Positions 3,897 through 30,116 of a DNA stretch of 35,636 nt are shown piece by piece (position 1 is the first letter of the stretch; each line of letters begins with the position of its first letter). A program made the translations under genes and the position numbers. Source of the DNA: Octopus sinensis (lineage: Eukaryota); NCBI RefSeq assembly GCF_006345805.1, contig NW_021826254.1, forward strand, positions 1 to 35,636, given 5' to 3'. The notes below the pieces were generated by a model, which saw nothing but the letters and a program-made list of their open reading frames with translations, did not search any database and was not told the origin of the DNA.

Positions 3897-4303
3897 TCTT
3901 TATCTTTTTACTTGTTTCAGTCATTTTGACTGCGGCCATGCTGGAGCACCGCCTTTAATCGAGCAACTCGACCCCGGGACTTATTCTTTTGTAAACCCAG
4001 TACTTATTCTATCGGTCTCTTTTGCCGAACCGCTAAGTGACGGGACATAAACACACCAGCATCAATTGTCAAGCAATGCTGGGGGACAAACACAGACACA
4101 CAAACATACACGCACACACGCATATATATATACATATATACGATGGACTTCTTTCAGTTTCCGTCTACCAAATCCACTCACAAGGCTTTGGTCGGCCCGA
4201 GGCTATAGTAGAAGACACTTGCCCAAGGTGCCACGCAGTGGGACTGAACCCGGAACCATGTGGTTGGTAAACAAGCTACTTACCACACAGCCACTCCTGC
4301 GCC
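3897..4303 (-). mobile_element. OK-like SINE, full length
   Basis: Near-identical to the copies at 10588 and 22365. Confidence 0.92.
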
Positions 4304-4896
4304 TATTTTATTTTTTAAATACTTTTATTTCTTAATGGGATGTTGCTTCTTTTTTATTTTCCTTTTATGCAAACTGTCAAATTTATCCCTAACACCCTGT
4401 ATACATTTAAGGTGCAGTACAGGATCACCACTTCTGACTTAAATTATATTTTATTCTCTCCACCAACGAGAAACGGAATCAAAGTTCAACACGTCGAGAT
4501 TTGATCTCAGATTGTAAGGATCCATCACACAGCTCGGTAGCAGCTTTGCCCAACCCATCGTCGCAGTGCTTCGGTATGTAATAGTGTTTTCCTTACATGT
4601 GTTTACTTAATGTTACAAGTGAAGATAACCGTATCTAATGAGAATAACAACGACAATACTTACAGGCATAACTGAGAAGGTGTCTAATCTAGACACATCT
4701 CTCACACATTTCATGGGAGAGGTGTTGTCGTACAAATTTCTATGTTCAAGCGTTCATAAACATATAAAAACTGTGTTATACAGACACATAGCTCACCTAT
4801 ACTTTATATGCACACACATACAGATATGTATGAGCTTACATCATTTATGAGTATGTGTGCGAGCGTGTGTGTGTGTGGTTAGAAACACTGTCAACA

Positions 4897-5829: not shown

Positions 5830-6841
5830 TTGTGTTAGCAGTGCGATATTCTCAGTTTAAAATTCCTCCCTACATATTTTCTATAAAATTCAGAGCCAGT
5901 GTGTATGAGTGGATCGAGAAATTTGAAAACAACTGGACAAACGCGAAGCACGAAGAGCAGGACATAAACCTCCATCACTAATGTGAAAGTTCAACAGGTT
6001 CGAAAAATGTTTCTAGTGAACCGACAAGTGATCATCGATGAGATGGCAAGTTTTCTGCAAATTAGACACGTTTCTGCGTACGAAATCATTTACAAGCCTC
6101 GCTTCTTCAAAGTGTATGTGAGATGGGTGCCATGAAAGGCTACGGAAGCGCATAAGCACGATCGTGTGGGTATTTGCGAATGTTTACTCGATCGCTACAA
6201 CGATGAATGCGAATATTTTGGGGAGAATAGTCACGCGAGAAGAGACCTAGTTCCGTCATCTTGAGCCAGAATCCAAAAGGCAGAGTACGGAGTGGAAATA
6301 CCTGGAATCACCAACAAAAGGGAAATTCAAGACAATATTCCGCAGAAAACGTGATAATAAACGTTTCTTGGGACGCAAAGGGGCCTATAGTGGAACATTA
6401 CCTGGAAAACGGGTGAAATACGGTGAAATACTCGCCATCAAACTGAAACCAGCAGTTCACACCAAACACCAATGTCTATTGTTAAAGCAAGTGTTATCGT
6501 TGCACGACAATGTACGTCCACATACGACCGCCCACACCGTTGAAACCATTGTAAAATTGTGTTTCGAGTTTATAGTTCAGATTTTGTCCCTCCCGACTAT
6601 TACGTATTTTGACTGCTCAGACATCCTTTCCGATGTCGTCAATTTACTACGGAGTGAGAAGCGAAGGAAGTCGTGTGAAAATGGCTGCAAAGACCTTCTT
6701 CTAACACGGTATAAGTAAGCCTGTGGACCACTTGACGACATGCATTGAAAAGAAAGAAGATTATGTCGAAAATGATGTAATTGGTCAACGCCTGCTTTGG
6801 TTTTCGCAAATTATAGAAACAAGAGTGCGTACAATTTTTGA

Positions 6842-8148: not shown

Positions 8149-9062
8149 ATGGAAAAAAGTCAAGGTAGAAAATGGTAAAATAATTTTATAAAAAAAAATT
8201 CAGTACCGGTTTCAGTCATTGAGACTTTTTCAACTGTGAGTATGGAAGTTTTTTTTAGAAGAATATTTGCATAGTGTTCAAATATAAGGGATATTTTCCT
8301 TGTTTCTGCCTGTTTCTGTCTCTCTTGTTTACTTTTGTGGGTTCCACAATAATTTCTCCAGGAACTAAACAAAATATCATTTAAATTGCTCTAGAGTGGA
8401 AAACCGGATAAAATTAAGAGAGTGGTGGCTTGTAAGCCTGTTAAAAAAGGTGGACTTGGTATGGTCGAAGCTTTTGCTTACGCCAGCTCTTTAAAACTAT
8501 CCTGGACGAGAACGTTGCTGGACATTCACAACGAATCCAAATGGAAACACTTATGCTACGCCTCCTCCACAAAACTGAAAAATTTAGTTGTATTTGGAAA
8601 CGTTTTCCCGAGCAAACTCGCTAACACTATCAGGAAGGATTTTGGGCATGATCGTATTTCTGCCTTTGACAAGTTTACAAATACGAAGGAGCCTAATTCA
8701 TTTGACAGAACCAATTCCCTTTAATAAACATTTAAGGTTCGGGAAAGAGGTAATCTTCATTCCTGCGTGGTTTGAGAGAGGTGTTAGCAAGAATCGTGAC
8801 TTTATCAGTTTAGATGGATCTTACCGTCCCCTGGAAGAATTCCAGAATTTTTAAAAAACATATACAAATTTTCTCCAGTATAATGGGCGACTAAAAGCTA
8901 CCAAACAGAGTTAAAGATACGCAAATCTACTGCTTTCCAACATTTAGAGGATAATACCGCAATCCGAAAGCTCATGTCTGTTAGGAAAGGAGCCAAACGA
9001 TACTACTCTGTTTTAAACAATGTTGAGACTTACTTAATATTGAAACACAAATGGGAAGAATG

Positions 9063-10420: not shown

Positions 10421-10587
10421 AGAAAAAGCATATATACCGATAGCGTCTTTGACTTGCCAATATTATTAGCAAAATTTATATATATAAAAGCAAAGTGGCA
10501 GAAACACTCACAGCTTCAAACATTTTCGATACTTTCTGCCGGACAGATATCGAATTTAAGAAAAAAACAACAAAAAAAAAACAGATA

Positions 10588-10999
10588 GGCGCAGGAGTGG
10601 CTGTGTGGTAAGTAGCTTGTTTACCAACCACATGCTTCCGGGTTCAGTTCCATTGCGTGGCACCTTGGGCAAGTGTCTTCTACTATAGCCTCGGGCCGAC
10701 CAAAGCCTTGTGAGTGGATTTGGTAGACGGAAACTGAAAGAAGCCCGTCGTATATATGTATATATATATATATATGTGTGTGTGTGTTTGTGTGTCTGTA
10801 TTTGACCCCCTAGCATTGCTTGACAACCGATGCTGGTGTGTTTATGTCCCCGTTACTTAGCGGTTCGGTAAAAGCGACCGATAGAATAAGTACTGGGCTT
10901 ACAAAAGAATAAGTCCCGGGGTCGAGTTGCTCGATTAAAGGCGGTGCTCCAGCATGGCCGCAGTCAAATGACTGAAACAAGTAAAAGAGTAAAAGAGTA
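10588..10999 (+). mobile_element. OK-like SINE, full length, young
   Basis: GGCGCAGGAGTGGCTGTGTGGTAAG...GGGTTCAGTTCC...CACCTTGGGCAAG...tail AAGTAAAAGAGTAAAAGAGT. Confidence 0.93.
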
Positions 11000-14902: not shown

Positions 14903-15849
14903 TGCCAATTTCGTATGAACTCGGCACTCGTAGAATATAATCCAGCTTTGGAAACCATTGTATTGAAAAGTTAAAAATACATTTTTGGAAAATTATTGTA
15001 TAGCTTCAAAAGATCTGGAAACTCGAAATTTCCAATGAAAAATGTTAAATTTACAACATATTTTTAACACATTTTGTATGTGTGTATGTGTTTTGTCGTG
15101 TGTCTGTATGTTTTTTTTTTATTTTTTGTTTGGTTATGGTTTAATTGTTGCTGCTGCTTAGTCAAGTAGGAAGTCTAAAGCCTTACAGCAACAAATAACG
15201 TCGTTGATTATTTGATAATGTGTTTATAATACTAAGATTATATTCTGTAATACAATAGTTATTTAATACTTTACAATGAATTTAGTCACGCTGTGAAATT
15301 ATTTCCTCTGATTAAACATCATGGCTTTCAGCAAGTTGGAAAGGAGGATGTATTCTAAATATTACTGCTGTCTGGATTTTAATCTTTTACCAAAATGAAA
15401 CAAAAGTATGTGTGAACAGACTTTCTTCAAAATAAAACACATTAATTCATATTTTTCAAACGAATACCCACCTTCTCATCGTATTTTTGGAACACAAACC
15501 ACCATTATTTATTTATTTATATTTTATATTTCGTCATGAAGTATTCTACATTTTGAAACACTTGTAATTTATATTTTTACAGAAAAAAAAAATGGAAAAC
15601 CTGTCATGCAAAAATCGAAATTTCTCGGTTTTTTTTAAATATTGTATTTTTATCTTGAAGCGGTGGAAGTGTGAAATTTTTTCTCTAAAATGCGTATTAC
15701 ATGTGTTTTAAAATTTGGAATTCTATATATCACTTAAGATATATTGTGTGCGATATACAAAGAACAACCAAATTTTGTTTGGTTAGGTATGTGTCTTTTG
15801 CATAACAATAAAAATTTGCTTCTTGTTTTCGTTTGTTTCGTCAAAGATT

Positions 15850-16400
15850 AACGTTTGGTTCAAAAGCTATTATTTCTAAGACAACTAGAAATAGATACAA
15901 AAGAAAAAGTAGTTAGTATTTCGTTTTTTAAGTTTCCTTCAATAGTACGAGTGAAGGTGCCATCATACATATATGCAGAAGATATGGAGGTAATAGTGAT
16001 TGAAAAGCACAACTACGGGAAATTGAAGGAGATGTGCGGAGATAGTGTTGACCCACCAGGAGTGAGGGTGTAATTCAAAGAGTTGCCACCTGAAGTGGGT
16101 CTAAGAGACATTGAACCACTGATGAAGTATTATTAAAAAGAAAAATATGTTAAATTGTAGGAAAAAAGAAAGAGTAAATCGCTTTGTTATCTTTAGGAAA
16201 ATAATGGTGAAAATGAAAAGATAAAAACAAAGAACAATTGTAGATAATGTATATAACGGTTCAAATGGGAGTTTTTTATTTTTATATAATTTCATCTCAT
16301 TTACATTCGTTTAATGTTTTTTTGTCCCCACTGTGGTCTTGTCTGTCCTTGTGGTGTCCCTGTCTGTGTTTACAGCTTTATGCCTAATAAAGAAATCAGT
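15850..16400 (+). mobile_element. Possible internally deleted L1/Tx1-like relic (ORF1-like piece plus tail)
   Basis: VRVKVPSYIYAEDM...GVRV*FKELPPEVGLRDIEPLMKYY resembles RRM-like ORF1 segments. Ends with TTGTCTGTCCTTGTGGTGTCCCTGTCTGTGTTT...AATAAAGAAAT. Confidence 0.35.
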
Positions 16401-16435
16401 CAGTATTTCGTTTTTTGAGCAGTAAATGGAATACC

Positions 16436-16845
16436 TATTTCTTTATTACCCACAAGGGGCTAAACACAGAGAGGACAAACAAGGACAGACATAGGTATTA
16501 AGTCGATTATATCGACCCCAGTGCGTAACTGGTACTTAATTTATCGACCCCGAAAGGATGAAAGGCAAAGTCGACCTCGGTGGAATTTGAACTCACAACG
16601 TAACGCAGACGAAATACCTATTTCTTTATTACCCACAAGGGGCTTAACACAGAGGGGACAAACAAGGACAGACATAGGTATTAAGTCGATTACATCGACC
16701 CCAGTGCGTAACTGGTACTTAATTTATCGACCCCGAAAGGATGAAAGGCAAAGTCGACCTCGGCGGAATTTGAACTCACAACGTAACGCAGACGAAATAC
16801 CGCTAAGCATTTCGCCCGGCGTGCTAACGTTTCTGCCAGCTCGCC
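16436..16845 (-). mobile_element. Deu/Nin SINE dimer (head plus two bodies)
   Basis: Junction at 16618/9 (minus GAAATA|GGTATTTC). 17-bp TSD GCAGTAAATGGAATACC at 16419-16435 and 16846-16862. Confidence 0.92.
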
Positions 16846-16862
16846 GCAGTAAATGGAATACC

Positions 16863-17680
16863 ATCGATGGTACGTTCTCGTCGCTGCCTCCTCCTCAGTT
16901 TATTGAAAATGTTACACATCCTGTGTTTCCACAGGATGCAAATAACTTTCGTAGATCTAACACATCGTTGAGCACTGTTATCAGAGCAGTAAATAAAATC
17001 AAGCATACGCTTTATAAAATCAATTCCCCACTGCTTCAACAGCTGAGAAATGATAATGCATTGAGAATGATAAAGATTTTCAAAATATTGTTGCTGCATA
17101 CAGAAGTTCGATGGATGGCAATGGGAAACTGCTTGAAAGGATTTTTTTCTTCCCCTTTTAAAACAGTTGTTGAATTATTGCATTGTGATGAACTAAGGCG
17201 CATGGCTCAGTGGTTAGAGCGTCGAGCTTACGATCGTGAGGTTGTGAGCTCGAATCCCGGACCGGGCTGCGTGTTGTGTTCTTGAGCAAGGAACTTTATT
17301 TCACGTTGCTCCAGTTCACTCAGCTGTAGAAATGAGTTGCGACGTCACTGGTGCCAAGCTGTATCGGCCCCTTTGCCTTTCCCTTGGATAACATCGGTGA
17401 CGTGGAGAGGGGAGGCTGGTATGCATGGGCGACTGCTGGTCTTCCATAAACAACCTTGCCCGGACTTGTGTCTAGGAGGGTAACTTTCTAGGTGCAATCC
17501 CATGGTCATTCATGACCGAAGGGGGTCTTTACCCTTACCTGATGAACTAAGAAACATCAAGCAGGAATCACAAAGCTCATTGAAATTAATTTGCAACCAC
17601 AAGGAAATGGGGGTTAATATTTACTAAGTTGAAATCAGCTCTCTCTACTTTTGCCCAAATCAAAGTTATTCAAATGTAAC
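16863..17680 (+). pseudogene. hAT (Buster/Charlie-like) transposase relic
   Basis: SLSTVIRAVNKIK...LLLHTEVRWMAMGNCLKGFF matches the LLLHTEVRWLS.G motif of Buster/Charlie transposases. Continues as ELR|NIK across the SINE at 17197. Confidence 0.8.
17197..17539 (+). mobile_element. tRNA-Arg(ACG)-derived SINE (OR-like head, CORE/Meta-like domain, tail X)
   Basis: GGCGCATGGCTCAGTGGTTAGAGC...CTTACGAT...TCGAATCCC, then TTGAGCAAGGAACTTTATTTCACGTTGCTCCAG. 12-bp TSD TGATGAACTAAG at 17186-17197 and 17540-17551. Confidence 0.9.
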
Positions 17681-17685
17681 ACAAG

Positions 17686-17923
17686 TTTACATTATTTACA
17701 TTTGATGGATATTTGTCCTCATCTTGTTTGTTGTTAACACAACATTTCGGCTGATATACCCTCCAGTCTTCATCAGGTGTCTTGGGGAAATTTCGAACCT
17801 GGGTTCTCATTCCTAAGGTATTTTTCGATGTTATTATTATTCGGGCCACTGCCTGGAATCTAACTCGGAATCTTGGGGTTAATAGCCCGCGCTCTTAACC
17901 ACTACGCCATATGCCCGTGGGCA
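17686..17923 (-). mobile_element. tRNA-headed SINE carrying a minimal hammerhead ribozyme
   Basis: Head 17843-17916 with A box TGGCGTAGTGG and B box GAGTTAGATTCC (one change from consensus). Then (AAT)n, a linker, the hammerhead, and tail AACAACAAACAAGATGAGGAC...TGTAAATAATGTAA. Confidence 0.85.
17736..17781 (-). ncRNA. Minimal type I hammerhead (copy 1)
   Basis: GACAC-CUGAUGA-A-GACUGG/AGGGUAUA/UCAGCC-GAAA-UGU-U^GUGUU. Stem I GACAC/GUGUU; loopless stem III. Confidence 0.75.
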
Positions 17924-17925
17924 TA

Positions 17926-18016
17926 CTTACATTATTTACATTTTACAGATAATTGTCCTCATCTTGTTTGTTGTTGACACAACGTTTCGGCTGATGTACC
18001 CTCCAGTCGTCATCAG
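17926..18016 (-). mobile_element. 5'-truncated tandem copy of the hammerhead SINE (hammerhead copy 2 plus tail)
   Basis: CUGAUGA-C-GACUGG/AGGGUACA/UCAGCC-GAAA-CGU-U^GUGUC followed by the same tail. 240 nt from copy 1 and truncated exactly at CUGAUGA. Confidence 0.85.
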
Positions 18017-18019
18017 TCC

Positions 18020-18340
18020 TACAGGGTTTACAGTGGAAATAGAACCATCTGGTTTCATCTTCCATTAAAGATTCTTCAGGGATTATGAAATCGGAGGGAT
18101 TGAGGAGTGAGGTACTTGCCTGAGATACCCTTGATGATCGGAGTGACTAGGGTGTGTGGAGTTCCTTAGTCCTCAGTGGAACTCCCGCCCCCCATTTGGG
18201 GATGGATTTTATTGTGTAATTTTTGTTGGTAATTGTTATTGTTTTATTGTATACACGAATTGCTAAGCCCCACTTGTCTCCGGTGTTATACTGTCCCTTT
18301 TCGTTTTGTATTCGGCCTTTGTGGCCAGTGAAGATTATCA
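18020..18340 (+). mobile_element. Probable LINE 3' UTR fragment
   Basis: Ends TGTCCC...GGCCTTTGTGGCCAGTGAAGATTA plus (ATT)n, resembling the L-tail GCCCCTTGTGGGCAATAAAGAAATA. Confidence 0.4.
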
Positions 18341-18354
18341 TCATTATTATTATT

Positions 18355-18671
18355 GCCTTTGCACAACTTCTAACGCTGCAGATGTACTACGGTGTCAGCT
18401 GTGCACTACCAGTGAACTAAAGTAACCCTCTTATTTTTCGAGTACCTTCCGGAATATTCGAGCGGTTCCAAGCAGTGCTGTTTTCTGCAAGTGTCCAATC
18501 CTTATTGCAGCCCTTATTTGTTCCACGTACTTCTCACGATTTTATACTCACCGTTCCCAGGGCTCCGACAATTATTGGTACTACTACCACCTTTTTCGGC
18601 GACCAGAACTGCTTAACCTCCCGAGCTTACCTGTCATGTCTATCAACTTTTCTTTCTTCCTTATCGCATAC

Positions 18672-18674
<3 letters not shown>
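18355..18674 (-). mobile_element. R4/Dong-type RLE non-LTR retrotransposon 3' end inside (TAA)n
   Basis: Minus: KEERKVDRHDR*AREVKQFWSPKKVVVVPIIVGALGTVS / EKYVEQI...HLQKTALLGTARIFRKVLEK* (stop at 18431-18433). (ATT)n on both sides. Confidence 0.85.
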
Positions 18675-18712
<38 letters not shown>

Positions 18713-19033
18713 GCAATGTATTTTTTCGTATTGTAAATATTTTCGTGTATAATTTTACTGGTTGACGTACAGCCAAGGATATTAAAATCCACTACACGGA
18801 GAGGGCCATCCAGAGTTTCATCCGTTAAATGTCACACAATGTAATGTCTATTTTTGCATATAAAACTTTAAAGATCACAGTTTTTCAAGTGGACCCAACA
18901 AGCATTCTTACTAAAGTTTATTTCTAATAGATACAGAAATAGATATTAACAATCTACTCCTTCCCCTATTTTCCAATGCCTCATACTGAGAAAACCGTTT
19001 CGAAATAATTGAACAGAATAGTGGTTGGCCTAA

Positions 19034-19447
19034 GGCGGCGAGCTGGCAGAAACGTTAGCACGCCGGGCGAAATGCTTTGCAGTATTTCGTCTACCGTTAC
19101 CTTCTGAGTTCAAATTTCGCCGAGGTTGACTTTACCTTTCATCCTTTCGGGGTCGATAAATTAAGTACCAGTTACGCACTGGGGTCGATGTAATCGACTT
19201 AATCCGTTTGTCTGTCCTTGAATGTCCCCTCTATGTTTAGCCCCTTGTGGGCAATAAAGAAATAAGAATTGCTAGCACGTTGGACGAAATTCGTCCGTCG
19301 CTACGTTCCAAGTTCAAATTCCGCCGAGGCCGACTTTGCCTTTCATCCTTTTAGGGGTTGAAGAAATAAGTACCGGTTATGCACTGGGGTCGATGAAATC
19401 GACTATCCCCCTCCCCCAAATTTCAGGCTTTGTGCATATAATAGAAA
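19034..19447 (+). mobile_element. Composite Deu SINE: L-tail copy nested in the head of an S-tail copy
   Basis: 19-bp TSD AGAATAGTGGTTGGCCTAA at 19015-19033 and 19448-19466. Internal junction GAAATA|AGAATTGCTAGCAC at 19264/5. Confidence 0.9.
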
Positions 19448-19539
19448 AGAATAGTGGTTGGCCTAAATAAGACTCTTCAGAATTAAGATGATTTGTGAAC
19501 ATTGGGTAGTTTGAAGCAGAGTGGATTTTCTATCTTTCA

Positions 19540-19915
19540 TCTTTTTTTACAGTTCTCAGTCATTGGAATGCAGCCATGCTAGGGCACTCCATCCCAGTAC
19601 TTTTTTTTAAAAAAAGTAGTACTTACCCTATCGCTCTCTTTTGCCAAACCACTTACTCACAGAAGCGTAAACCAACACCGGTTATCAAGCAGTGACAGGA
19701 GAAAGGGCGACAAACACAGACACGAAGACATGCACAGCTACACCCACGCATACATATAAACGACGGGCTTCCACATAGTTTCCATCTCCCACCAAATTCA
19801 CTCTCAAAGTATTGGTCGGTAGTAGAATAGCAGAATCATTTGCCAAGGCGTCGTGCAGCGGCACTGAACCGGAAAACATATGGTTACAAATCCAGCCTTT
19901 TAACCACGCTTGCAC
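19540..19915 (-). mobile_element. Old OK-like SINE
   Basis: CAGTCATTGGAATGCAGCCATGCT...CAAGGCGTCGTGCAGCGGCACTGAACCCGGAAACATATGG. Confidence 0.8.
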
Positions 19916-19939
19916 ATATCGATTAAATATATTCTAATT

Positions 19940-20504
19940 TTTATAGATCGATCTCGCTGATAAAAAGCATAAAGTGTTGTAAAGTAAAAGCCATACTCTC
20001 ACTGAAGACCTTGTGCCTCGGTAATACATAAAAATAAGTACTAGGTTGACTGGAGGTGCCCGAAGCAGCCTTGAATGAAATATATGTGCGTACAATCATA
20101 TTTAACACGTTCGTAAACATTTGGACGTGAGAAAACCTTTTGCTGCTGAAATAGTCGCTGGAGGAGAAAATTCTTCTTATAGATAATAGGTTTGAAAACA
20201 TATCGTTGGTCTATGAAAAATATCATCGGACCGTTAGACGCATGCGTTTCAGCACCGTTACGTTTCAATAGCTACGAATATGGAATCAATCATTCACAGC
20301 CTCGTTAAAAATGTTTGATCATGTATAAAAATATGGCAACTACTACATTTGCTGTCTTGCGCAAAACTTGGACAAGTTGGAATTAATTATCTGGAGGTGA
20401 TCGAAGCTGAGTTAAATGAAATATCGCTGCGCTTTTCTACAACGTCTCTCTAGATCTTTTCATCGCCACCAAGGGGGCAGTGCCGTCCACGTTGAGAACC
20501 ACTG
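19940..20504 (-). mobile_element. hAT (Buster/Charlie-like) 5' end relic
   Basis: Minus strand begins CAGTGGTTCTCAAC...GCCCCCTTGGTGGC, a typical Charlie-type terminus. Degraded ...FNEAV... resembles the FSNEAMKP segment of Buster transposases. Confidence 0.55.
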
Positions 20505-20790
20505 GTGTATACAATCATATATAAAACGTTACCCTCGAAGACAATTTCCGTTGCGAAAGATCCAGTGTGAAATACGTTTGTACACACTTTCAAATAGATC
20601 TTTTAATGAACAAATATTCTCAAATTTTTCACACACTTGTTGGAATAATATATCAAACGTCAGTTATGTAACAAAGATGGTAACCCAAAGAATCAATACT
20701 GGTTTTGTTTTACTTGATAAGTGGGGGTTGGAAGATGTGGAGGCGTTCATGTTTGTCCCCAAAGCATTAGGAACATATATTTCAGGAACG

Positions 20791-21022
20791 TGCTGGTAGA
20801 CTCGTTAGCGCGCCGGGCGAAATGCTTAGCGGTATTTCGTCTGTCGTTACGTTCTGAGTTCAAATTCCGCCGAGGTCGACTTTACCTTTCATCCTTTCGG
20901 GGTCGATAAATAAAGTACCAGTTTCGCACTGGGTGGGGGGGGGTCGATGTAATCGACTTAATCCCTTTGTCTGTCCTTGTTTGTCCCCTCTATGTTTAGC
21001 CCCTTGTGGGCAATAAAGAAAT
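20791..21022 (+). mobile_element. L-tail Deu SINE monomer
   Basis: 16-bp TSD ATATATTTCAGGAACG at 20775-20790 and 21023-21038. Confidence 0.92.
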
Positions 21023-21289
21023 ATATATTTCAGGAACGGTTACGTTATGATGCGATCCATCCGTTGCAGCGAAATGTGTAGATGAAGGGAAGATCAATAA
21101 GACTCTCTTTGGGAGGTTTATGAGTGTGTGAGCTTTTGTGTGTGTGTGAGTGTGTGTGTATGATTACGTGTCTGTACTCGTGTGGGTGTTTTAAACATGC
21201 GCACACACGTGTATGTAAATTGTTGATTGAATAAAACCATCATTGACGCTGATAACTTTAGGAAGAGAGGTAATGGAAAATTGTGTGTA

Positions 21290-21448
21290 TGCTTAAGTGT
21301 GCATATGTATATATATAAATATATACATATATATATATATGTGCATATACATATATATATACAAACATATATATACCTATACATACATATACACAGGCAT
21401 ATAACATATATATGTATATATACGCACATATACATACATATATATACG

Positions 21449-21492
<44 letters not shown>

Positions 21493-21667
21493 GTGCATAT
21501 ATATACATATACATATATATACAAACATATATATGCCTATACATACATATACACAGGCATGTAACATACGTACATATGCATACATATATATACGTATATA
21601 ATATATATATATATATATATATACACATACATATATACCTGTATATATGTATGTATTTATGTAAGTG

Positions 21668-21711
<44 letters not shown>

Positions 21712-21800
21712 ATATATATAATACTATAGGTGTGTGTATGTATATGCATGTAATATGTGTGGGTGTTCGTGATATATGTATGTGTGTGTGTGTGTGTCCA
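21290..21800. repeat. Compound TA/CA/TG microsatellite with an internal ~150-bp duplication
   Basis: ACAAACATATATAT.CCTATACATACATATACACAGGCAT occurs twice. Confidence 0.9.
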
Positions 21801-21889
21801 AATATGCAATCTCTAAATAAAGTTTTCTCTTCAGTTCTTTAGTCGTTCAATATCTCTAACATTTTGGAAATCCTCATAGAATACTCTGC

Positions 21890-22060
21890 TACTTAAGTTT
21901 TGAATTTGCTGCTCAACTTTGGAATGGTTTACTTTAGTCTCTCGGGTGTTAAAAAAAAAACGCCAACACGATAAAAGAAGCCTGGAGAGTTCAAAGAGAA
22001 ATTCTACAGCTCTCCATAGATACGTCTATAGAATTATACCATCGAACTGGGATTAGCCAT
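21890..22060 (+). pseudogene. Possible CR1/L2-type RT C-terminal relic
   Basis: EFAAQLWNGY...WRVQREI resembles LEYA..VWNPY...VQRRATK; highly degraded. Confidence 0.35.
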
Positions 22061-22364
22061 TAACAAGAATCTAAATCCTGTTGTTGTTAATGGAAATACG
22101 ACATCTAGCAGAAGAAATTAATCCTTTAGCAGACGAGACTGTACCCACTTACATACAGCTTGTGTCAGAGACGCAATATGGTGACTACAACGGGAAGAAA
22201 GAGAAAGATAATGATTGGCGATGATATTGTGTAGAGATGTGTTCGCTGACAGCTCAACCAGAATGGCTGAAAAGGCTGAATAGGCGGAGATGGAACAGAT
22301 AAGCAATCATTTGAGCCAAATCAAACACACAAACGTTGCTAAATAATAAATTCGTTCTATGTAT

Positions 22365-22772
22365 ACTCTTTTACTCTTTTACTTGTTTCAGTCATTCGAC
22401 TGCGGTCATGCTGGAGCACCGCCTTTAGTCGAGCAACTCGACCCCGGGACTTATTCTTTGTAAGCCCAGTACTTATTCTATCGGTCTCTTTTGCCGAACC
22501 GCTAAGTGAAGGGGACGTAAACACACCAGCATCGGTTGTCAAGCAATGCTAGGGGGACAAACACAGACACACAAACACACACATACATATATATATATAT
22601 ACATATATACGACAGGCTTCTTTCAGTTTCCGTCTACCAAATCCACTCACAAGGCATTGGTCGACCCGGGGCTATAGCAGAAGACATTTGCCCAAGATGC
22701 CACGCAGTGGGACTGAACCCGGAACCATGTGGTTGGTTAGCAAGCTACTTACCACACAGCCACTCCTGCGCC
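22365..22772 (-). mobile_element. OK-like SINE, full length, young
   Basis: Near-identical to the copy at 10588; short (C)TATGTAT duplication at both ends. Confidence 0.93.
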
Positions 22773-22789
22773 TATGTATGTCATTATTG

Positions 22790-23235
22790 AATTTATTTTA
22801 AGATTTCTTGTCGATTGAGAAAGAACTGGTTTCTAATCTAGATCCAAGGCTCCTTCATTGGAATTTCAACAACAGGGTATGTACGTATTTACGTATTTAT
22901 ATATGCATGTATGTGCAGATTTGTATGTTTTATGTATATATTCTCATGCATATAGTTACATATCTAGACATGCTCATATATACGTATTTAAATGATAAAC
23001 TTCTGGAAAGTTTTACAGCTTTTAACAGTTCTAGTGATGGATTGAATCTGTAGTCTTCGAATTAGCTTTCTCTTTTCTGGTTTTTACAAGCCTAATTTCT
23101 CAGCATTGATATATAGGCAGTGTGTTATATATCCCAGGGGCCCCAATGATTACAGGTATAAACCTGAACTTGTAATCTGGATAAAGAAACTGCAGATTCC
23201 TCAATAGTTCAGCATAGGTGTTTTCTTTTTCACGG
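22790..23235 (-). mobile_element. Second RLE-type (R4/Dong/NeSL-like) non-LTR 3' end
   Basis: Minus: KIREKENTYAELLRNLQFLYPDYKFRFIPVIIGA...RRLQIQSITRTVKSCKTFQKFII*, followed by a 3' UTR. Confidence 0.65.
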
Positions 23236-23291
23236 ATCTTCAAATTACGGGCCTTGTGCCTAGAGTAGAAAAGAATATTAAAGGTTTATAA

Positions 23292-23753
23292 GGCGGCGAG
23301 CTGGCAGAATCGTTAGCACGCCGGGCGAAATGCTTACCGTTATTTCGTCTGTCTTTACGTTCTGAGTTCAAACTCTACCGAGGTCAACTTTGCCTTTCTA
23401 TCATTTCTAGGTCGTTAAATTAAGTACCTATTTCTTTACTACCCACAAGGGGCTAAACACAGAAGGGACAAACAAGGACAGACAAAGGGATTAAGTCGAT
23501 TACATCGACCCCAGTGTGCAACTGGTACTTAATTTATCGACCCCGAAAGGATGAAAGGCAAAGTCGACCTCGGCGGAATTTGAACTCAGAACGTAGCGGC
23601 AGACGAAATACCGCTAAGCATTTCGCCCGGCGTGCTAACGTTTCTGCCAGCTCGTTAAATTAAGTACCAGTTGCGTACTGGGGTCGATCTAATCGACTGC
23701 CCCCCCCCCCCCAAAAAAAAATTCCAGGCCTTGTGTCTCGAGAAGAAAAGAAT
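23292..23753 (+). mobile_element. S-tail Deu SINE with an antisense L-tail SINE (23429-23652) inserted in its Deu domain
   Basis: 16-bp TSD CGTTAAATTAAGTACC at 23413-23428 and 23653-23668. Confidence 0.92.
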
Positions 23754-23769
23754 TACGCGGCTAGAGTGA

Positions 23770-23940
23770 ACGAGTGTTTTAATACATTTGGCTGTTTGTT
23801 GAAAAAATTGGGAATCGGATCAAAGAATGTTCGTGACTAGAACAGGAGACTCCTCCACAAAGGCGTTCCTAGATGTGTTCCAAAGCTGGAAAGCGTTCTG
23901 GAATCGATGCATCAAGAGTCGCTGATTGAAATCACCTTGA
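23770..23940 (+). pseudogene. mariner transposase C-terminal relic
   Basis: KAFLDVFQSWKAFWNRCIKS resembles EAFQDCFQSWK.RW.RCI. Confidence 0.45.
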
Positions 23941-23997
23941 AATCATTTGCAAGCCTAATTACATTGTAATTAAGGCCATATATGCGACTGAATGCAG

Positions 23998-24000
<3 letters not shown>

Positions 24001-24083
<83 letters not shown>
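24001..24083. repeat. (TC)n(CA)n microsatellite
   Basis: Direct reading. Confidence 0.97.
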
Positions 24084-24087
<4 letters not shown>

Positions 24088-24506
24088 TCACATACACACG
24101 CGCGCACTCACACACACACACGCTCACTACATTCGTACATAGGTACGTATATATGTTTATGTATGTTTATAGTTATATATCTATATATGTAACTGAGGGC
24201 ATATGAACAAGAGTGTGTGTGTGTGTGTTTGTGTGTGTACGTGCGTATGCAAGTGTGTGTGCACGCGCGCAAGCATATGTGTGTGCGTGTGCGCACGCGG
24301 GGGTGTGTGCATGTATGTAACTTACTGAAAGTACATTCATATGTATGTGTATAGTTCTCGCCTGAGATCACGTCAGGCGAGAACTGAAGATCGCCGTGGC
24401 ATGAAACTCAAGTAGCGGAATAAGAATTAAATTCCAATGAACCAAAACCATTACGGCATGTATTAAGCACCTCCTCTCTTACTTGCCAGATACACTTCAC
24501 CGTTTT

Positions 24507-24556
<50 letters not shown>

Positions 24557-24735
24557 TATGAGTATGTTTGTGCGTGTGTGTCTGTGACCTTCATAAAAAA
24601 AACATCATTCCTGGTCATGAAAATAAAAAGAAACAATCCATGTTTTATAATATCATTCGTATTCATTATAGTAACCTGTAACTTTGCACAGGTAGAAACT
24701 GGTTATTTAGGTACAAGATTATAGTATATTACTGG

Positions 24736-25161
24736 GGATCTTTTCGGTTTGACCGGCAGCTTTTTTTAAATAATTTTCACGTAACTAAACACTTTTAAAC
24801 TTCGTATACTGGTAGAATGTGTTTATAAAACATCTTTGTCTCTTGGCTTTATTGAGAAAAATTCTATAGTTTGTAAGATATTTATTGTTTTTTTCTTCAA
24901 TTTCTGCAATTTCAACCAATCAATGACGTCTATTGAGGTGAAAACATTCTGTGCCGTATGAATATGTCCCTCGTTTGAGAAACATATTGGGTATATTTAC
25001 ATTTTTGAAGAAAAAAAGATACCCTTCCCCCCCAACCCTAACCCTAACCCTAACCCTAAAACAGATTGAAATGCAATAGATCGGTACTAGGGTCATAATT
25101 ATGGGTAACAATTTCATATGACACTGCTAGAAAAAAACTGCTGTTCAAACCGAAAAGATCT
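24736..25161. mobile_element. Second member of the GGATCTTTTC foldback family, asymmetric, with (CCCTAA)4
   Basis: Ends GGATCTTTTCGGTTTGACCGGCAG / CTGCTGTTCAAACCGAAAAGATCT. 9-bp TSD TATTACTGG/TATTACCGG at 24727-24735 and 25162-25170. Left arm homologous to the 9063 element. Confidence 0.88.
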
Positions 25162-25489
25162 TATTACCGGTAGTTATTGTTAGGTTTTCTCGTAGACGTT
25201 TGACCCGGGGGTAAAGAAAAACACGTGTTTCAACGGGACCAGAGGATGAAAGCATAAAAATCAAGACCATTGACTCGCAGAACTAGAACATCAACAAGCG
25301 AAACAAGACGGATGCTTGCAAAATATTTCACACACAGACACACACACACACACACACACACCTATATATTTAGATAACCAGTGATGGTGATAGAGAGAGA
25401 GGGACCTTGATAGATTAATAAATTAGATAGGCGAATAGATCGATTCATAGATACATACATAGATACAATTGATTGCTAAGTAGCATTAT

Positions 25490-26080
<591 letters not shown>

Positions 26081-26399
26081 TACAACAAAAGATTGTTGAT
26101 ACAAAATGCTATACAATTTAGTCGTGTATCATTATTATTGTTTGAGAAAGGAATTCGAAAGAGAAAAGAATAATAATATAAAAAATGGAAACATACTTAA
26201 AAGCAGAAGGTGGACAATATGCGCAGAAATTCTGTGGTATTAGATTATGCAAACAATCAAGAAGATAATGTTCTTAGCTTAAGCTTACTTCTAGAACATT
26301 TCTGAATAAAAATAGATAAAAGAAAGAACAGAGAGAGAAAATAAAATGAGATACTAATCTTGCTAAGAATGTAAATTTGATGAGAAATACATAAGCGAA

Positions 26400-26412
26400 T
26401 AGATAAGTCAAC

Positions 26413-26476
<64 letters not shown>

Positions 26477-26518
26477 GGATAGAGAGAGAGATAGATAGAT
26501 ATATATATATATATATAT

Positions 26519-26555
<37 letters not shown>

Positions 26556-26652
26556 GAGATAGAGAGATGGATGGATAGATAGATAGATAGATAGATAGAT
26601 AGAGAGATAGAGAGATAGAGAGATACATAGATGGATAGATAGATAGATAGAT

Positions 26653-26714
<62 letters not shown>

Positions 26715-26720
26715 GAGTTA
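26400..26720. repeat. (GATA)n tetranucleotide array
   Basis: Direct reading. Confidence 0.95.
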
Positions 26721-27239
26721 GATAGATATGTAGGTAGATGAAAGGCGGGTGGCTTCTTTAATCACCTAGCACTATCTCGGATTCGATCTCGCGTATTTAT
26801 CTTTTATTTCCTATCACTCTACCTAGTTTTTTTTCGTGATAAGAACAATTGTGTTTCTCAAGAACGAAGTTCTCACAATCCTTCTATCTATTACTTTAAC
26901 ACTTCGACTAATTTGCATAAGATGTACAAGTGTTTTCTCTTAATCTTCTGTGATCTTACAACTCATATTACAAATTTTTATCAACTCGATTCATATTTTA
27001 TACAGAAGGAGTGTATTTATTTATTTGTTTCTTTATTTGTGTACGTCTTCAAGAAGTATGGATTTCTTCTTAAAATATTTCTACGGAAACGCAAACAACC
27101 ACCATTACCATCATTCTGCTTGCATCAATTTTTTTTTTATTAGGTGTGAAACAAAGTGAAAAATATTCAAGGAGAGTTATGATGTGTTTCAATTCCATTC
27201 GGTATAATGAGCTGGTAATGTTTTATTGCTCAAACAAAA

Positions 27240-27372
27240 TTGGTGAACTTCCCCGGATAAAATTTCTAGTGGCATTTCGTTCGGGTTTTACGTTCTAAAC
27301 TCAAATTCCGCCGAGCTTGACGATATCTTTCATTCTTTCAGCATCAACAGATTAAGTCCCAGTCGAGCACAA
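27240..27372 (+). mobile_element. Diverged Deu SINE fragment
   Basis: TTACGTTCTAAACTCAAATTCCGCCGAG...CTTTCATTCTTTCAG. Confidence 0.65.
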
Positions 27373-27487
27373 CCAGCATATCAATCCCTTCTCGAGTCAC
27401 ATAGATCCATAAGAACGTGTCCCAGTTTCAGCGGTGTATATACTTTCCCATTTGGCGGGACGCACGATTACTTATTTTTGTCATGCA

Positions 27488-27967
27488 TAAGACATGCATA
27501 AGATCTGGTCATCAAATCTAAGTAGAGACTTCAAACTTGAAATCTTCAAAGCCACAGTCGAACCAATTCTACTATATGGCGCAGAAACTTGGACGTTATC
27601 AAAGAAGCTTGAGAGGCGGTTGGATGGAACCTACACTCGCCTCCTTATGAGAGCTCAAAATCTCTCGTGGAAGCGCCATCCAACCAAAATGCAAATATAT
27701 GGGAAACTACCACCTGTGTCATCTCTTGTGAAAGGTAAGAGAGTCCAGTTTGCTGGACATTGTTGTAGAGGTAATTTCTACTCTTCTCCTCTGGAAGCCA
27801 TCTACTCGCAATACCAGAGGGCGCACACTCTCCTACCCTGATGTAATCTCCAGGGATACAGGCATCCAGCAACAGGACCTCCGTAATGCCATGATGGACC
27901 GTGAAGTCTGGCGTAGCATGGTAAATTCCATTGTCTCGACCACGGACGAACAATGATGATGATGATG
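27488..27967 (+). mobile_element. 5'-truncated RTE-clade LINE with a (GAT)n tail
   Basis: IWSSNLSRDFKLEIFKATVEPILLYGAETWTL...QFAGHC...DREVWRSMV; one frameshift; the stop runs into the (GAT)n tail. TSD ATTTTTGTCA(T)GCA at 27474-27487 and 27968-27980. Confidence 0.9.
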
Positions 27968-27984
27968 ATTTTTGTCAGCAGAAT

Positions 27985-28090
27985 AAACTGGAGCAACGTG
28001 AAATGAAGTGCTTTGCCCGTTCTAGAAATCGAAACTATAATCTTAAGATCATGACTGCAACAGCATAACCACTAAGCCATGCTGTGCACC
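27985..28090 (-). mobile_element. OR-like SINE head/core fragment
   Basis: GGAGCAACGTGAAATGAAGTG...AACCACTAAGCCATG. Confidence 0.65.
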
Positions 28091-28209
28091 TCACTTGCAC
28101 GTGTAGTGTAAAGAATTATTTTATTGACTCCAGAGGGATGAAAATCGAGTCGGACATGTTGTGATGCGAACCCAAATCATGAAGAAAACGAAACTTATGC
28201 ATCCTTGTT

Positions 28210-28415
28210 ATTATTCACTTGTTTCAGTCGTTAGACTGCGGCCATGCTGGGGCATCGCATTGAAGGGTTTATCGGACAAATCAAACACAGCGCTTGTGTT
28301 TTTAAAGCCTGGTAATTATTCTATTGGTATCTTTTTTTGTTGCCGAACCGTTGTCATGGGGCCATAAACAAACCAGCACCGGTTGTCATATCAAGCAGTG
28401 GTGCGGAAAAGATCA

Positions 28416-28490
<75 letters not shown>
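28210..28490 (-). mobile_element. OK-like SINE 3' half
   Basis: CTTGTTTCAGTCGTTAGACTGCGGCCATGCTGG...; ends in the internal CA/TA tract. Confidence 0.8.
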
Positions 28491-28496
<6 letters not shown>

Positions 28497-28760
28497 TACG
28501 ACCTGGTGGCATAACCCGAATTTACACAACCAACAATGCTAGGGTGAACCATGCGAAATTGATATGCCAATCCAATGCGTCTCAATTGCGGTGGGGGGGG
28601 GTTGTTCCCCCTGTCAGTAAATAGAAAATGTGCTTTTGTGTCTAAAGAATACTTTGGCTCTTAGTTCTAGTAACGCTTGTGCTCCCTCTACCGTTCGTCA
28701 CATTTTAGTGACGGTGAATAATTTTCTTTTTAGTTTTGAATTGCCTCTGGCCACCTTCAT

Positions 28761-28791
<31 letters not shown>

Positions 28792-28955
28792 GTAAAAACA
28801 ATTAAGATTCAAGGGAGTTCTATTGAATTCACTTGAATGCGGTACTTAACTTAGATGCACCAGAAAACTATATGGTATTAACCATACAATAATGTGGGGT
28901 GATTATAAACAAGAAAAAAAGCAACAAGAATGGATTCTTGTTGCTTTTTTCTTGT
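28792..28955 (+). mobile_element. Deleted relative of the 7728-7992 element, with a terminal hairpin
   Basis: GGTACTTAACTTAGATGCACCAGA and TGGGGTGATTAT match the 7728 element; (TA)n flanks; 22-bp hairpin at 28909-28955. Confidence 0.65.
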
Positions 28956-28974
28956 ATATATATATATATATATA

Positions 28975-29362
28975 TATTATATAAAATCCGTTCTGTCTGT
29001 CTGAGTGTCTTCTAGGATCTTGGGCATCCTCCATCCGATTGCGCTCAAATTTGATATGTAGATACCGACGGAATCAGGGCGTGTATAAGTCTTGAAAAAA
29101 ATTACAAAAATCGATTCCAGGTGAGAATGCGATCGATAAAGCCGTGGGAACGGGAATTTATACGCGCAAGTACATTAGCGTACGCGAGAAAAAGTCTATC
29201 TTTATTTTTTTCTTTTGCTGGTGTCTCAAATTTAGGTTAAATCAGTGTTTCTGAAAGGGAAACCTATGGGACGGTCGGACAAGTTGTTTTGAGAAAATTT
29301 GGTTTAAATGTTTGACAACTCAGCGCCGTCCATTGGACCGGGGGGAGGGGCGTTTTGCTCGT
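28975..29362 (+). mobile_element. Helitron/HINE-like non-autonomous element
   Basis: Starts TATTATATAAAATCCGTTCTGTCTGTCTG in a TA tract. Ends with a GC-rich stem (GTCC-ATT-GGAC) and GCTCGT, close to a CTAG-T end. Confidence 0.5.
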
Positions 29363-29375
29363 ATATATATATATC

Positions 29376-29694
29376 GTGGCACTTCGTCGGTTACGACGAC
29401 GACGAGGGTCCCAGCTGATCCGATAAACGGAACAGCTTGCGCGTGAAATTAACGTGCAAGTGGCTGAGCACTCTACTGACACGTGTACCCCTTCACGTAG
29501 TTCTCAGGGAGATTCAGCGTGACACAGAGTGTGACAAGGCTGGCCCTTTGAATAACACGTACTACTCATTTTTGCCAGATGAGTGGAGCAACGTGAAATA
29601 AAGTGTCTTGCTCAAGGACACAACGTCTCGCTGGGAATTGAACTCACGACCTTCCGATCGTGAGCCGAATACCCTAACTACTAAGCCACGCGCC
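29376..29694 (-). mobile_element. tRNA-Arg(ACG)-derived SINE (OR-like head, CORE/Meta-like domain, tail Y)
   Basis: Head and core as at 17197; tail ...TCGTCGTAACCGACGAAGTGCCAC as at 33952. Confidence 0.9.
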
Positions 29695-29710
29695 ATCATA
29701 TATATATATA

Positions 29711-29883
29711 TTCTTTTATTCTTTGACTGCGGCCATGCTGGAGCACCGTCTTTAGTGGAACGAAGCGACCCCAGGACTTACTCTTTGTAAGTTTAGTAAT
29801 TATTCTATCGTTCTCTTTTGCCGAACCGCTAAGTTACGGGACGTAAACACACCGACATCGGTTGTCAAGTAATGGTGGTGGGA

Positions 29884-29961
<78 letters not shown>

Positions 29962-30116
29962 ACGCGCTTCATTCAGTTTCCCTTATCAAATTCGGTCACA
30001 AAGCTTTGGTCGGTGCGGAGCCATTGTGGAAGACACTTACCCAGGGTGCCGCGTAGCGGGATTGAATCCAAGACCATATGATTGGGAAGTAAACTTCTTA
30101 CCACACAGCCACGCCT
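29711..30116 (-). mobile_element. OK-like SINE
   Basis: GACTGCGGCCATGCTGGAGCACCG...ACCACACAGCCACGCC. Confidence 0.88.

Follow-up and report, generated by a model that had tools for sequence, protein, structure and literature searches.

In a 35,636-nt stretch of the Octopus sinensis genome (RefSeq assembly GCF_006345805.1, contig NW_021826254.1, positions 1 to 35,636; here called the window), an earlier note made from the sequence alone had described a short minus-strand repeat with a tRNA-like head and a hammerhead ribozyme motif, accompanied by a truncated second copy (positions 17686 to 18016). This arrangement probably consists of two adjacent retrotransposition products of one high-copy Penelope-like element (PLE) family: a 239-nt short form of the element's terminal module (its pseudo-long terminal repeat, or pseudo-LTR) and a 90-nt, 5'-truncated tandem copy of that module. 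Elsewhere in the genome the module is linked to a PLE open reading frame (ORF), the ORF reads through the hammerhead, copies terminate at two alternative 3' ends, and insertions have the structures typical of PLEs. The promoter-like boxes and the hammerhead recur in diverged relatives.

The module is the end of a Penelope-like element

A family consensus was built from 34 full copies in the O. sinensis assembly (2.72 Gb). Five of these 34 copies carried a 5' "leader," through which the partner element was traced. At locus L064, the module starts 47 nt after the stop codon of an ORF that contains reverse transcriptase (RT) fragments and a nuclease domain, and the same ORF-module junction was found at 11 more independent loci (12 in total). 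The RT matched RVT_1 (E = 2.8e-4) and shared 37 to 40% identity with its counterparts in other octopus PLEs, and the nuclease domain has the GIY..YIG motif VYSIQCSCGRLYRGETCRPLKIRVEEH. Among relatives of the nuclease ORF, one is named a GIY-YIG endonuclease by JGI and one carries PF01541. An autonomous-type PLE with RT and GIY-YIG domains, which the earlier note had proposed as the mobilizing partner, is thus present and has the entire module in common with the short repeat. The stop codon of the RT/GIY-YIG ORF precedes the module in the intact element, and the body of the next tandem unit follows it. The module comprises, in order, 47 nt of 3' untranslated region (UTR), a 74-nt tRNA-like segment, (AAT)n, an ATG, the hammerhead, an AC-rich stretch with (AATAATGTA)n, and a 33-nt tail.

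Several results weigh against this assignment. Pfam called no GIY-YIG domain, and no family at all, on the family's own nuclease and N-terminal ORFs, and a profile-profile comparison of the nuclease was weak (E = 1.3e-3, probability 18%). Among the 150 best endonuclease matches, no intact autonomous copy was detected; the longest open frame was 442 amino acids (aa), and many copies contained stops. Candidate counts at first look dropped toward the 5' end (nuclease, 4,635; RT, 827; 5' region, 288), as expected because retroelements are 5' truncated.

An initial sample of PLEs, the 30 loci best matching the Pfam GIY-YIG model (PF01541), was rejected as the partner: these loci belong to other families and have no similarity to the module. 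These families (L031 to L060) carry a hammerhead with a U3-A8 core (UUGAUAA-GGUUC..GAACC-GAAA-CAUG-UA) 600 to 900 nt after the nuclease domain (e.g., L038:2362-2400, plus strand) and end approximately 70 nt past it, inside (TA)n microsatellites. Some are apparently young, with open frames of up to 883 aa and many identical nuclease domains.

The linkage to a PLE bears directly on a conventional alternative, namely, that the repeat is an ordinary tRNA-type short interspersed element (SINE), mobilized by a long interspersed element (LINE), that resembles a hammerhead by chance. LINE families are numerous in octopus genomes, and unclassified SINE families run to hundreds (PMC13282606); the target-site duplications of 9 to 14 bp that exist in this family would fit such an origin. 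However, this alternative is already refuted by the connection of the module to the PLE ORF, since at 12 loci the module is the 3' end of an element encoding RT and a GIY-YIG-type nuclease. Inverted partners within one duplication, the optional 33-nt tail, and tandem sequence beyond the copy end also argue against it, as does retention of the hammerhead core in relatives at 50% protein identity. A strict scan for minimal hammerheads gave a chance expectation of 0.005 matches per shuffled window. We therefore give this explanation a negligible probability.

The PLE reading frame passes through the hammerhead

In tandem copies at loci L077 to L079, L081, and L083, the upstream partial module reads unbroken past the tail into the PLE body (...AGAACTGTA-TTATCTAATCGG...). 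These upstream partial modules, placed ahead of full-length PLE bodies, are of the same type as the truncated copy in the window. The ORF opens at the ATG at consensus position 118 (window positions 17808 to 17810, minus strand), and its frame crosses the hammerhead, the 9-nt repeats (NNV codons), and the tail without a stop and enters the N-terminal domain; at L078, 320 aa are open from before the hammerhead. The 9-nt repeat AATAATGTA at the copy end (window positions 17687 to 17705) varies from 1 to 4 units among family copies. Because it is in frame with the ORF (Asn-Asn-Val repeats), these length changes preserve the frame.

The hammerhead starts 29 nt after the ATG and copies end approximately 125 and 163 nt into the ORF, with the hammerhead located roughly 55 to 90 nt upstream of the points at which reverse transcription appears to start. 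In PAc, a Poseidon element of the anole, the ORF begins at stem II of the hammerhead, and reverse transcription starts 111 to 118 nt into it (PMC11167929). The octopus ORF layout closely follows that of PAc, and the octopus copy ends are therefore internal to the RNA.

Insertion signatures are those of Penelope-like elements

Copies of the family end either within (AATAATGTA)n or 33 nt beyond it, after CATAATTCCTCATCTCTTAAATATAGAACTGTA. In the window, the AC-rich stretch plus AAATGTAAATAATGTAAA (17686 to 17735, minus strand) is the region of these copy ends and would hold a first internal start site for reverse transcription; the further 33 nt, putatively leading to a second such site, are absent from the window copy and were present in about half of the sampled members (23 of 47 copies). 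In inverted pairs, usually only one arm carries this tail.

Most of the structural counts given here come from samples of a few dozen loci, and the sample of the 30 best loci is biased toward full-length short copies. Within that sample, an inverted, 5'-truncated copy stood head to head with a full copy at approximately 18 loci. A target duplication of 9 to 14 bp encloses the entire inverted pair at L004, L008, L012, L020, L021, L022, and L027, and surrounds single copies at L014 and L017; since a single duplication encloses each pair, each pair represents one insertion event. Flanking repeats of at least 8 nt were found for 28% of units versus 3.9% in controls. On contig C1, all six close hammerhead/tail pairs were head to head (none direct, none tail to tail), and the first 100 linker words yielded four head-to-head pairs versus one direct pair. 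Direct tandems occurred at only 1 to 2 of the 30 loci: the window, plus a locus resembling a segmental duplication. At that second locus (L022:1501-2253), two full short copies lie in direct orientation 246 nt apart with the same 3' flanks. This pair is a local duplication of 499 nt, not a tandem of the hammerhead type. Direct partial tandems such as that of the window are a minority outcome, and head-to-head inverted partners are the rule.

Tandem and inverted structures and the tail are among the hallmarks of PLEs (PMC8557442). In anole PAc, both target strands are cut and extended, and reverse transcription starts at two internal sites 30 to 40 nt apart (PMC11167929). The insertion features of the octopus family fit the listed hallmarks and are consistent with the PAc biochemistry. 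Two proposals of the earlier note are borne out by these data: mobilization by PLE machinery, to which inverted partners in one target duplication, the optional tail, partial tandems, and PLE linkage all point, and the equation of a partial tandem bearing a 5'-truncated upstream copy with the known pseudo-LTR arrangement of PLEs.

The window tandem and its hammerhead motifs

Re-reading of the window sequence located every feature listed in the earlier note where it had been reported. The full unit (17924 to 17686, minus strand; 239 nt; consensus positions 1 to 242) is a short-form copy of the PLE terminal module that ends, without the tail, at the first of two alternative 3' ends used by the family. 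Upstream of it on the same strand, beyond a 2-nt GT junction (17925 to 17926), lies the 5'-truncated, pseudo-LTR-like tandem copy (18016 to 17927; 90 nt; consensus positions 152 to 244), which is 91% identical to the full unit, begins precisely at C3 of CUGAUGA, and ends in AATAATGTAA, also without the 33-nt tail. Similarity to the linker that seemed to continue upstream of 18016 was discarded as not significant, being reached by 59 of 500 shuffles. The earlier note had reported neither a target-site duplication nor an internal T4 terminator; we likewise detected no convincing duplication flanking the window unit, only an ambiguous 7-mer (TGTAAAC), and no TTTT anywhere in the 239-nt unit.

The minimal type I hammerhead of the full copy occupies 17781 to 17736 of the minus strand. 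Stem I is formed by GACAC (17781 to 17777) and GUGUU (17740 to 17736), and between these strands lie CUGAUGA (17776 to 17770), a bulged A (17769), stem II (GACUG, 17768 to 17764; CAGCC, 17753 to 17749), GAAA (17748 to 17745), UG in place of the consensus CG (17744 to 17743), U16.1 (17742), and U17 (17741), with the predicted cut at 17741/17740. In the partial copy, the corresponding elements on the same strand are CUGAUGA (18016 to 18010), a bulged C (18009), stem II (GACUG, 18008 to 18004; CAGCC, 17993 to 17989), GAAA (17988 to 17985), CG (17984 to 17983), U16.1 (17982), U17 (17981), and GUGUC (17980 to 17976), with the predicted cut at 17981/17980. Both cuts had been correctly positioned in the earlier note.

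In the consensus, ATGCCCAC, the 74-nt tRNA-like segment, (AAT)n, and a linker are followed by GACAC-CUGAUGA-A-GGCUG-loop-CAGCC-GAAA-CG-U-U^GUGUU, the AC-rich stretch, and (AATAATGTA)n. The hammerhead portion is a perfect minimal type I motif, with a stem I of 5 bp (one of them G.U), a stem II of 5 to 6 bp, an extra A between A9 and G10.1, and a GAAA-CG-U-U insert containing the palindrome ACGU. The conserved core (CUGANGA ... GAAA ... U-H) is present in the consensus and in both window copies. PLE hammerheads are characterized by a bulged base before stem II, a short stem I, a missing helix III, and a palindromic insert (PMC4209133), and the earlier assignment to this minimal type, based on the bulged A before stem II, the lack of loop 3, and the palindromic ACGU, therefore stands. 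Rfam hammerhead models gave no match at the gathering score or at E values of up to 10 in the window, copies, consensus, or relatives, an expected outcome because the motif has no helix III. Both window cores are degraded: each carries G10.2 to A, leaving stem II with an A.C mismatch; in the full copy, ACGU has additionally changed to AUGU (CpG decay), and the B box is mutated as well.

Stem positions were paired in 78.5% of cells in the true register versus at most 45.5% when the register was slid. The earlier note had expected a working core to be better kept than its flanks; it was no better kept (5.4% versus 5.7%). Equal decay of core and flank is what neutral decay of dead copies gives, and this comparison therefore does not bear on function. 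Two common variants lie within the motif, one at N7 (the one free core position) and one at 10.2 (G-C to A.C). In consensus sequences of relatives with 50 to 56% protein identity from two other assemblies (ENA ERZ26693861 and ERZ21867824), the core is invariant though the encoded peptide changes (W to R, Q to R, and V to T/K). The four-fold degenerate codon sites U4, G12, and U16.1 are also invariant in these relatives. Pair 10.4-11.4 of stem II changes from U-A to C-G via U-G intermediates, a suggestive case of compensatory change in a region that is also coding.

Two results weigh against the preferred explanation set out below. The covariation check proposed in the earlier note turned up this one pair in few lineages, and the overall score, reached by 53 of 500 shuffles, was not significant. 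A designed double hammerhead (-22.7 kcal/mol) was less stable in the energy model than two separate monomers (-27.2 kcal/mol). PLE hammerheads have low activity in vitro, and PAc cleavage is protein assisted (PMC4209133, PMC11167929); the lack of support for a dimer in the energy model agrees with both observations.

The dimer is central to the interpretation advanced in the earlier note, in which co-transcribed tandems of a "retrozyme-SINE" form a dimeric hammerhead and release monomers of approximately 240 nt, perhaps circular. Such monomers might serve as transposition intermediates. Because helix III is missing and ACGU is palindromic, the hammerhead could act only with a partner, and the full-copy GACAC, core, and stem II can indeed pair with the partial-copy ACGU-U^GUGUC, with a perfect match between GACAC and GUGUC. 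Metazoan retrozymes and PLE tandems have, moreover, been described (PMC7229834, PMC4209133). Yet the partial copy lacks the 5' strand of stem I, and the 17741/17740 cut cannot form. The window tandem thus permits at most one cut (17981/17980) and would free no 240-nt monomer. With the promoter-like boxes located between the cores, a transcript started there contains one core only. Direct tandems are also too rare, at 1 to 2 of 30 loci and 0 direct versus 6 inverted pairs on C1, to suggest that the unit is arranged for a dimeric ribozyme. Copy ends fall at position 1 and at 245/281, away from the cleavage site, and none of 17 partial copies begins at G1.1. Cleavage would moreover part the region where reverse transcription starts from the body of the element, and the substrate of the anole PLE is uncleaved RNA, with no reads ending at the hammerhead site (PMC11167929). 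Taken together with the degraded cores, these observations do not support self-processing into monomers or circles, and we consider this interpretation very improbable.

Further hammerhead-like motifs were seen in the sampled loci. At L039:850-1100 (plus strand, with a minus-strand mirror), a small element whose sequence is unrelated to the window module forms a head-to-head palindrome and carries a C3-G8 motif (CUGAUGA-A-UGACUGC..GCAGGCA-C-GAAA-CGAUC). The minus strand of L084, an ENA contig, holds at reverse-complement position 4575 (plus-strand positions ~95 to 147) a minimal hammerhead with a palindromic loop 3 (CUACA-CUGAUGA-GGCG-UAAUAA-CGCC-GAAA-CACGUG-UC-UGUAG), which probably belongs to a different PLE.

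Copy forms and the tRNA-like segment

The family has thousands of copies in the O. sinensis genome. We counted exact matches to diagnostic words genome-wide, with a reversed control that returned 0 for every word. The linker 31-mer occurred 3,629 times, the hammerhead 32-mer 2,632 times, the tail 31-mer 2,528 times, and the 31-mer spanning the PLE junction 536 times; the short-form 5' end (ATGCCCACGGGCATATGG) occurred 537 times and the read-through 5' end (TTGCCCACGGGCATATGG) 416 times. Since approximately 15% of sampled copies match the words exactly, we estimate, as a rough figure, a family on the order of 15,000 to 30,000 hammerhead-bearing fragments. Some 15% of linker-bearing copies run on into the PLE, and a similar share stop at positions 1 to 2, as the window copy does. 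The majority have their 5' end somewhere from position 18 to position 103, in many cases at the edge of (AAT)n, which could simply be a joining hot spot. Among partial arms, 8 of 17 start at positions 83 to 84, and none of 100 exact-hammerhead copies on C1 had the exact short-form head upstream. The census thus excluded the full short form as the dominant form of the family.

The 5' end of the short form is nevertheless discrete. Position 1 of the consensus, about 14 to 15 nt before the A box, was the 5' end in 17 of 33 copies, and approximately half of the cDNAs that reach this position end there, far above the rate elsewhere. Overall, 5' ends cluster at positions 1 to 2, 8 to 12, and 83 to 84 (17924, ~17916, and ~17842 in the window), which coincide with the predicted start of RNA polymerase III (Pol III) and with both ends of the 74-nt, tRNA-sized segment. 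The bases preceding TGCCCAC differ from those of the PLE and extend an inverted repeat of GGGCATAT. The arm of this repeat is as short as 8 nt in some copies and longer than 200 nt in others, with a single fixed center. Variable arms around a fixed center would be the pattern expected of snap-back at a real RNA 5' end. The full window unit conforms to this pattern: in its 5' end, ATGCCCAC (17917 to 17924, minus strand), TGCCCAC is collinear with the PLE 3' UTR, and the A before it, where the PLE has T, extends the inverted complement of GGGCAT, a snap-back signature.

The tRNA-like segment of the window (17843 to 17916, minus strand) contains an A box, TGGCGTAGTGG (17909 to 17899), that matches TRGCNNAGTGG at 11 of 11 positions, and a B-box-like site, AGTTAGATTCC (17865 to 17855), that matches at 9 of 11. 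In the family consensus the A box is the same, and the B box, AGTTCGATTCC, matches at 10 of 11 positions, 44 nt away. The segment is followed by (AAT)3 (17833 to 17841), a microsatellite whose length in other copies varies from 3 to over 12 units. In relatives, whose UTR has otherwise diverged, A- and B-box matches, the ATG context, and the hammerhead still follow one another in the same order. Their A box is perfect in L084, deviates at one or two positions in two others, and is degraded or missing elsewhere; their B-box-like site is GGTTCAATCC.

About a fifth of copies begin roughly 14 nt ahead of the A box. Such a discrete 5' end is compatible with a putative Pol III start, and initiation on the tRNA-like boxes may be the likeliest cause of the short form, a proposition to which we give about an even chance. 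As the unit has no T4 terminator, its transcripts would end in flanking DNA. Other findings weigh against Pol III use. ARAGORN called no tRNA on the window, copies, consensus (even at a relaxed score), or relatives, and the Rfam tRNA model matched none of these at E values of up to 5. Short and PLE-linked copies showed no fixed non-CpG difference, and all subfamily variants were common to both. Short copies are about as numerous as read-through copies (537 versus 416), and most members of the family lack the head; Pol III has therefore made no large independent amplification.

The shared variants and the copy numbers also lend weight to the main alternative, which dispenses with a Pol III SINE: the PLE's own RNA would give rise to the short form as a by-product, and short copies would be dead on arrival. 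In one variant, RNA polymerase II (Pol II) starts at positions 1 to 2 in the pseudo-LTR, and reverse transcription from the 5'-proximal internal start produces a "solo pseudo-LTR." In the other, RNase P/Z-type processing cleaves a long read-through RNA at the tRNA-like segment. For the ATG at position 118 to be used, transcription must start upstream of it, which puts a start in the very region where the short form has its 5' end. Consistent with a by-product, short and PLE-linked copies have all variants in common, the short form is only about as numerous as read-through copies, the 5'-end clusters at 8 to 12 and 83 to 84 match both ends of the 74-nt segment, and internal initiation of reverse transcription is documented for a PLE (PMC11167929). 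However, a Pol II start leaves unexplained why A- and B-box matches recur in diverged relatives in the right order and at the right spacing. Moreover, of the eight copies that reach the PLE 5' body, none has an upstream pseudo-LTR starting at position 1 or 2 (starts were at 83, 135, 136, 239, and 273), and the segment is not recognized as the tRNA fold that RNase P/Z would require. On balance we regard the by-product explanation as rather unlikely.

A wider proposal can be put forward only tentatively, as somewhat less than an even prospect: a PLE clade found in O. sinensis and at least two other organisms may carry a conserved tRNA-like pseudo-LTR module that serves as an internal Pol III promoter, a target for tRNA processing, or both, and spawns its own SINE. 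Unit-length RNAs would then be set by tRNA-type punctuation together with the in-ORF hammerhead, and the 5' ends at 1 to 2, 8 to 12, and 83 to 84 would mark the Pol III start, RNase P, and RNase Z sites, respectively.

Other repeats in the window

By-eye reading of translations, with no homology search run, suggested a mariner-type transposase remnant (HDNVRPHTTAHT...) and two remnants of LINE-type RT C termini at 6251 to 6718, 8395 to 8724, and 27491 to 27841 (all plus strand). Three copies of a repeat with the translated motif GTEPG(T/S)MWLVNKLLTTQPLL lie at ~450 to 554 and 4200 to 4335 (plus strand) and at 10556 to 10700 (minus strand). These probably represent a different octopus SINE family; no hammerhead was detected in scans of the three copies. 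At 16464 to 16800 (plus strand), approximately 0.9 to 1.2 kb from 17686, are two tandem repeats of about 50 codons (TQRGQTRTDIGIKSI.STPVRNWYLIYRPRKDERQSRPR.NLNSQRNADEIP).

Discussion

Under the explanation that we prefer, two adjacent retrotransposition products of one PLE family, the PLE protein would bind the module and cut both target strands, and reverse transcription would start inside the RNA at one of two sites. Two internal starts could yield copies with or without the tail, head-to-head pairs, and the occasional partial tandem. The short form would derive from a template RNA beginning approximately 14 nt upstream of the A box, and if Pol III produces that RNA, the short class would be a SINE to which the PLE's own end gave rise. 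The hammerhead may be kept as part of a module that combines the 5' coding region of the PLE with recruitment of RT and, if active, would need a second copy or the PLE protein. The window tandem would then be a by-product of integration rather than a self-processing device.

The module joins tRNA-type boxes, a minimal hammerhead, and a PLE, which are usually treated apart, and the genome sequence directly reveals both its parent element and its insertion signatures. It provides a natural case for asking what role the long-puzzling minimal hammerheads of PLEs play, with a layout that is the same as in the only PLE studied biochemically. Thousands, and probably tens of thousands, of repeats that annotation pipelines would label as unclassified SINEs or unknown are PLE ends; in a recent repeat census of Octopus vulgaris, 893 SINE families are left unclassified and hammerheads go unmentioned (PMC13282606). 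Should Pol III use prove true, the family would be a documented SINE with a PLE partner, born from that PLE's own pseudo-LTR. In the searchable literature, we found no case of a SINE partnered by and born from a PLE, no PLE with tRNA-type boxes in its pseudo-LTR, no short form starting at such boxes, and no description from cephalopods. Already known are PLE pseudo-LTR hammerheads, the tail, inverted and tandem insertion, retrozymes as PLE derivatives, and the combination of tRNA-type SINE and hammerhead in Sm-alpha.

Compared with these known systems, the octopus family most resembles PAc and other PLEs in its ORF with RT and GIY-YIG domains, partial tandems, and inverted 5'-truncated partners (PMC4209133, PMC8557442, PMC11167929). 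Its type I hammerhead has the bulged base before stem II and lacks helix III, as in PLEs generally. As in PAc, the ORF starts next to the hammerhead, copies end 100 to 160 nt into the ORF, and an optional tail of 30 to 40 nt is explained by two internal start sites for reverse transcription. Unlike PAc and other PLEs, the octopus pseudo-LTR includes, in the interval from the stop codon to the ATG, a tRNA-like segment that carries A and B boxes, and the family has a discrete short form that starts just upstream of this segment. Within the same genome, its canonical C3-G8 core with a 2-nt CG insert distinguishes it from the other sampled PLEs, which have U3-A8 cores and (TA)n ends.

Sm-alpha and Sj-alpha of schistosomes likewise combine a tRNA-type head and a hammerhead in a short, high-copy retroposon; their tRNA-derived head carries a Pol III promoter, and their hammerhead, with a weak helix III, works better in multimers (PMC2770079, PMC6765202). 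Sm-alpha differs in having a canonical hammerhead with loops, a head derived from tRNA-Gln, tandem arrays, and multimer cleavage shown in vitro, whereas the octopus unit has a minimal hammerhead, rare tandems, and a head unrecognized as a tRNA and is the end of an autonomous-type PLE. Metazoan non-LTR retrozymes are also short, noncoding hammerhead repeats and are thought to be nonautonomous derivatives of PLE pseudo-LTRs (PMC7229834; bioRxiv 10.64898/2026.07.22.740005). The defining trait of retrozymes is the tandem array, from which circular RNAs arise; the octopus family, known here from genomic sequence, is dispersed, occurs mostly as single or head-to-head copies, and ends away from the cleavage site. 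Finally, Cassandra, Helenus, and Ajax carry a sequence resembling a small-RNA gene with Pol III boxes inside a terminal repeat (5S- or tRNA-like sequences within LTRs) (PMC10886601). Those are nonautonomous LTR elements, whereas the octopus host is a PLE whose pseudo-LTR arises by tandem insertion and includes, in addition, a ribozyme motif and a start codon.

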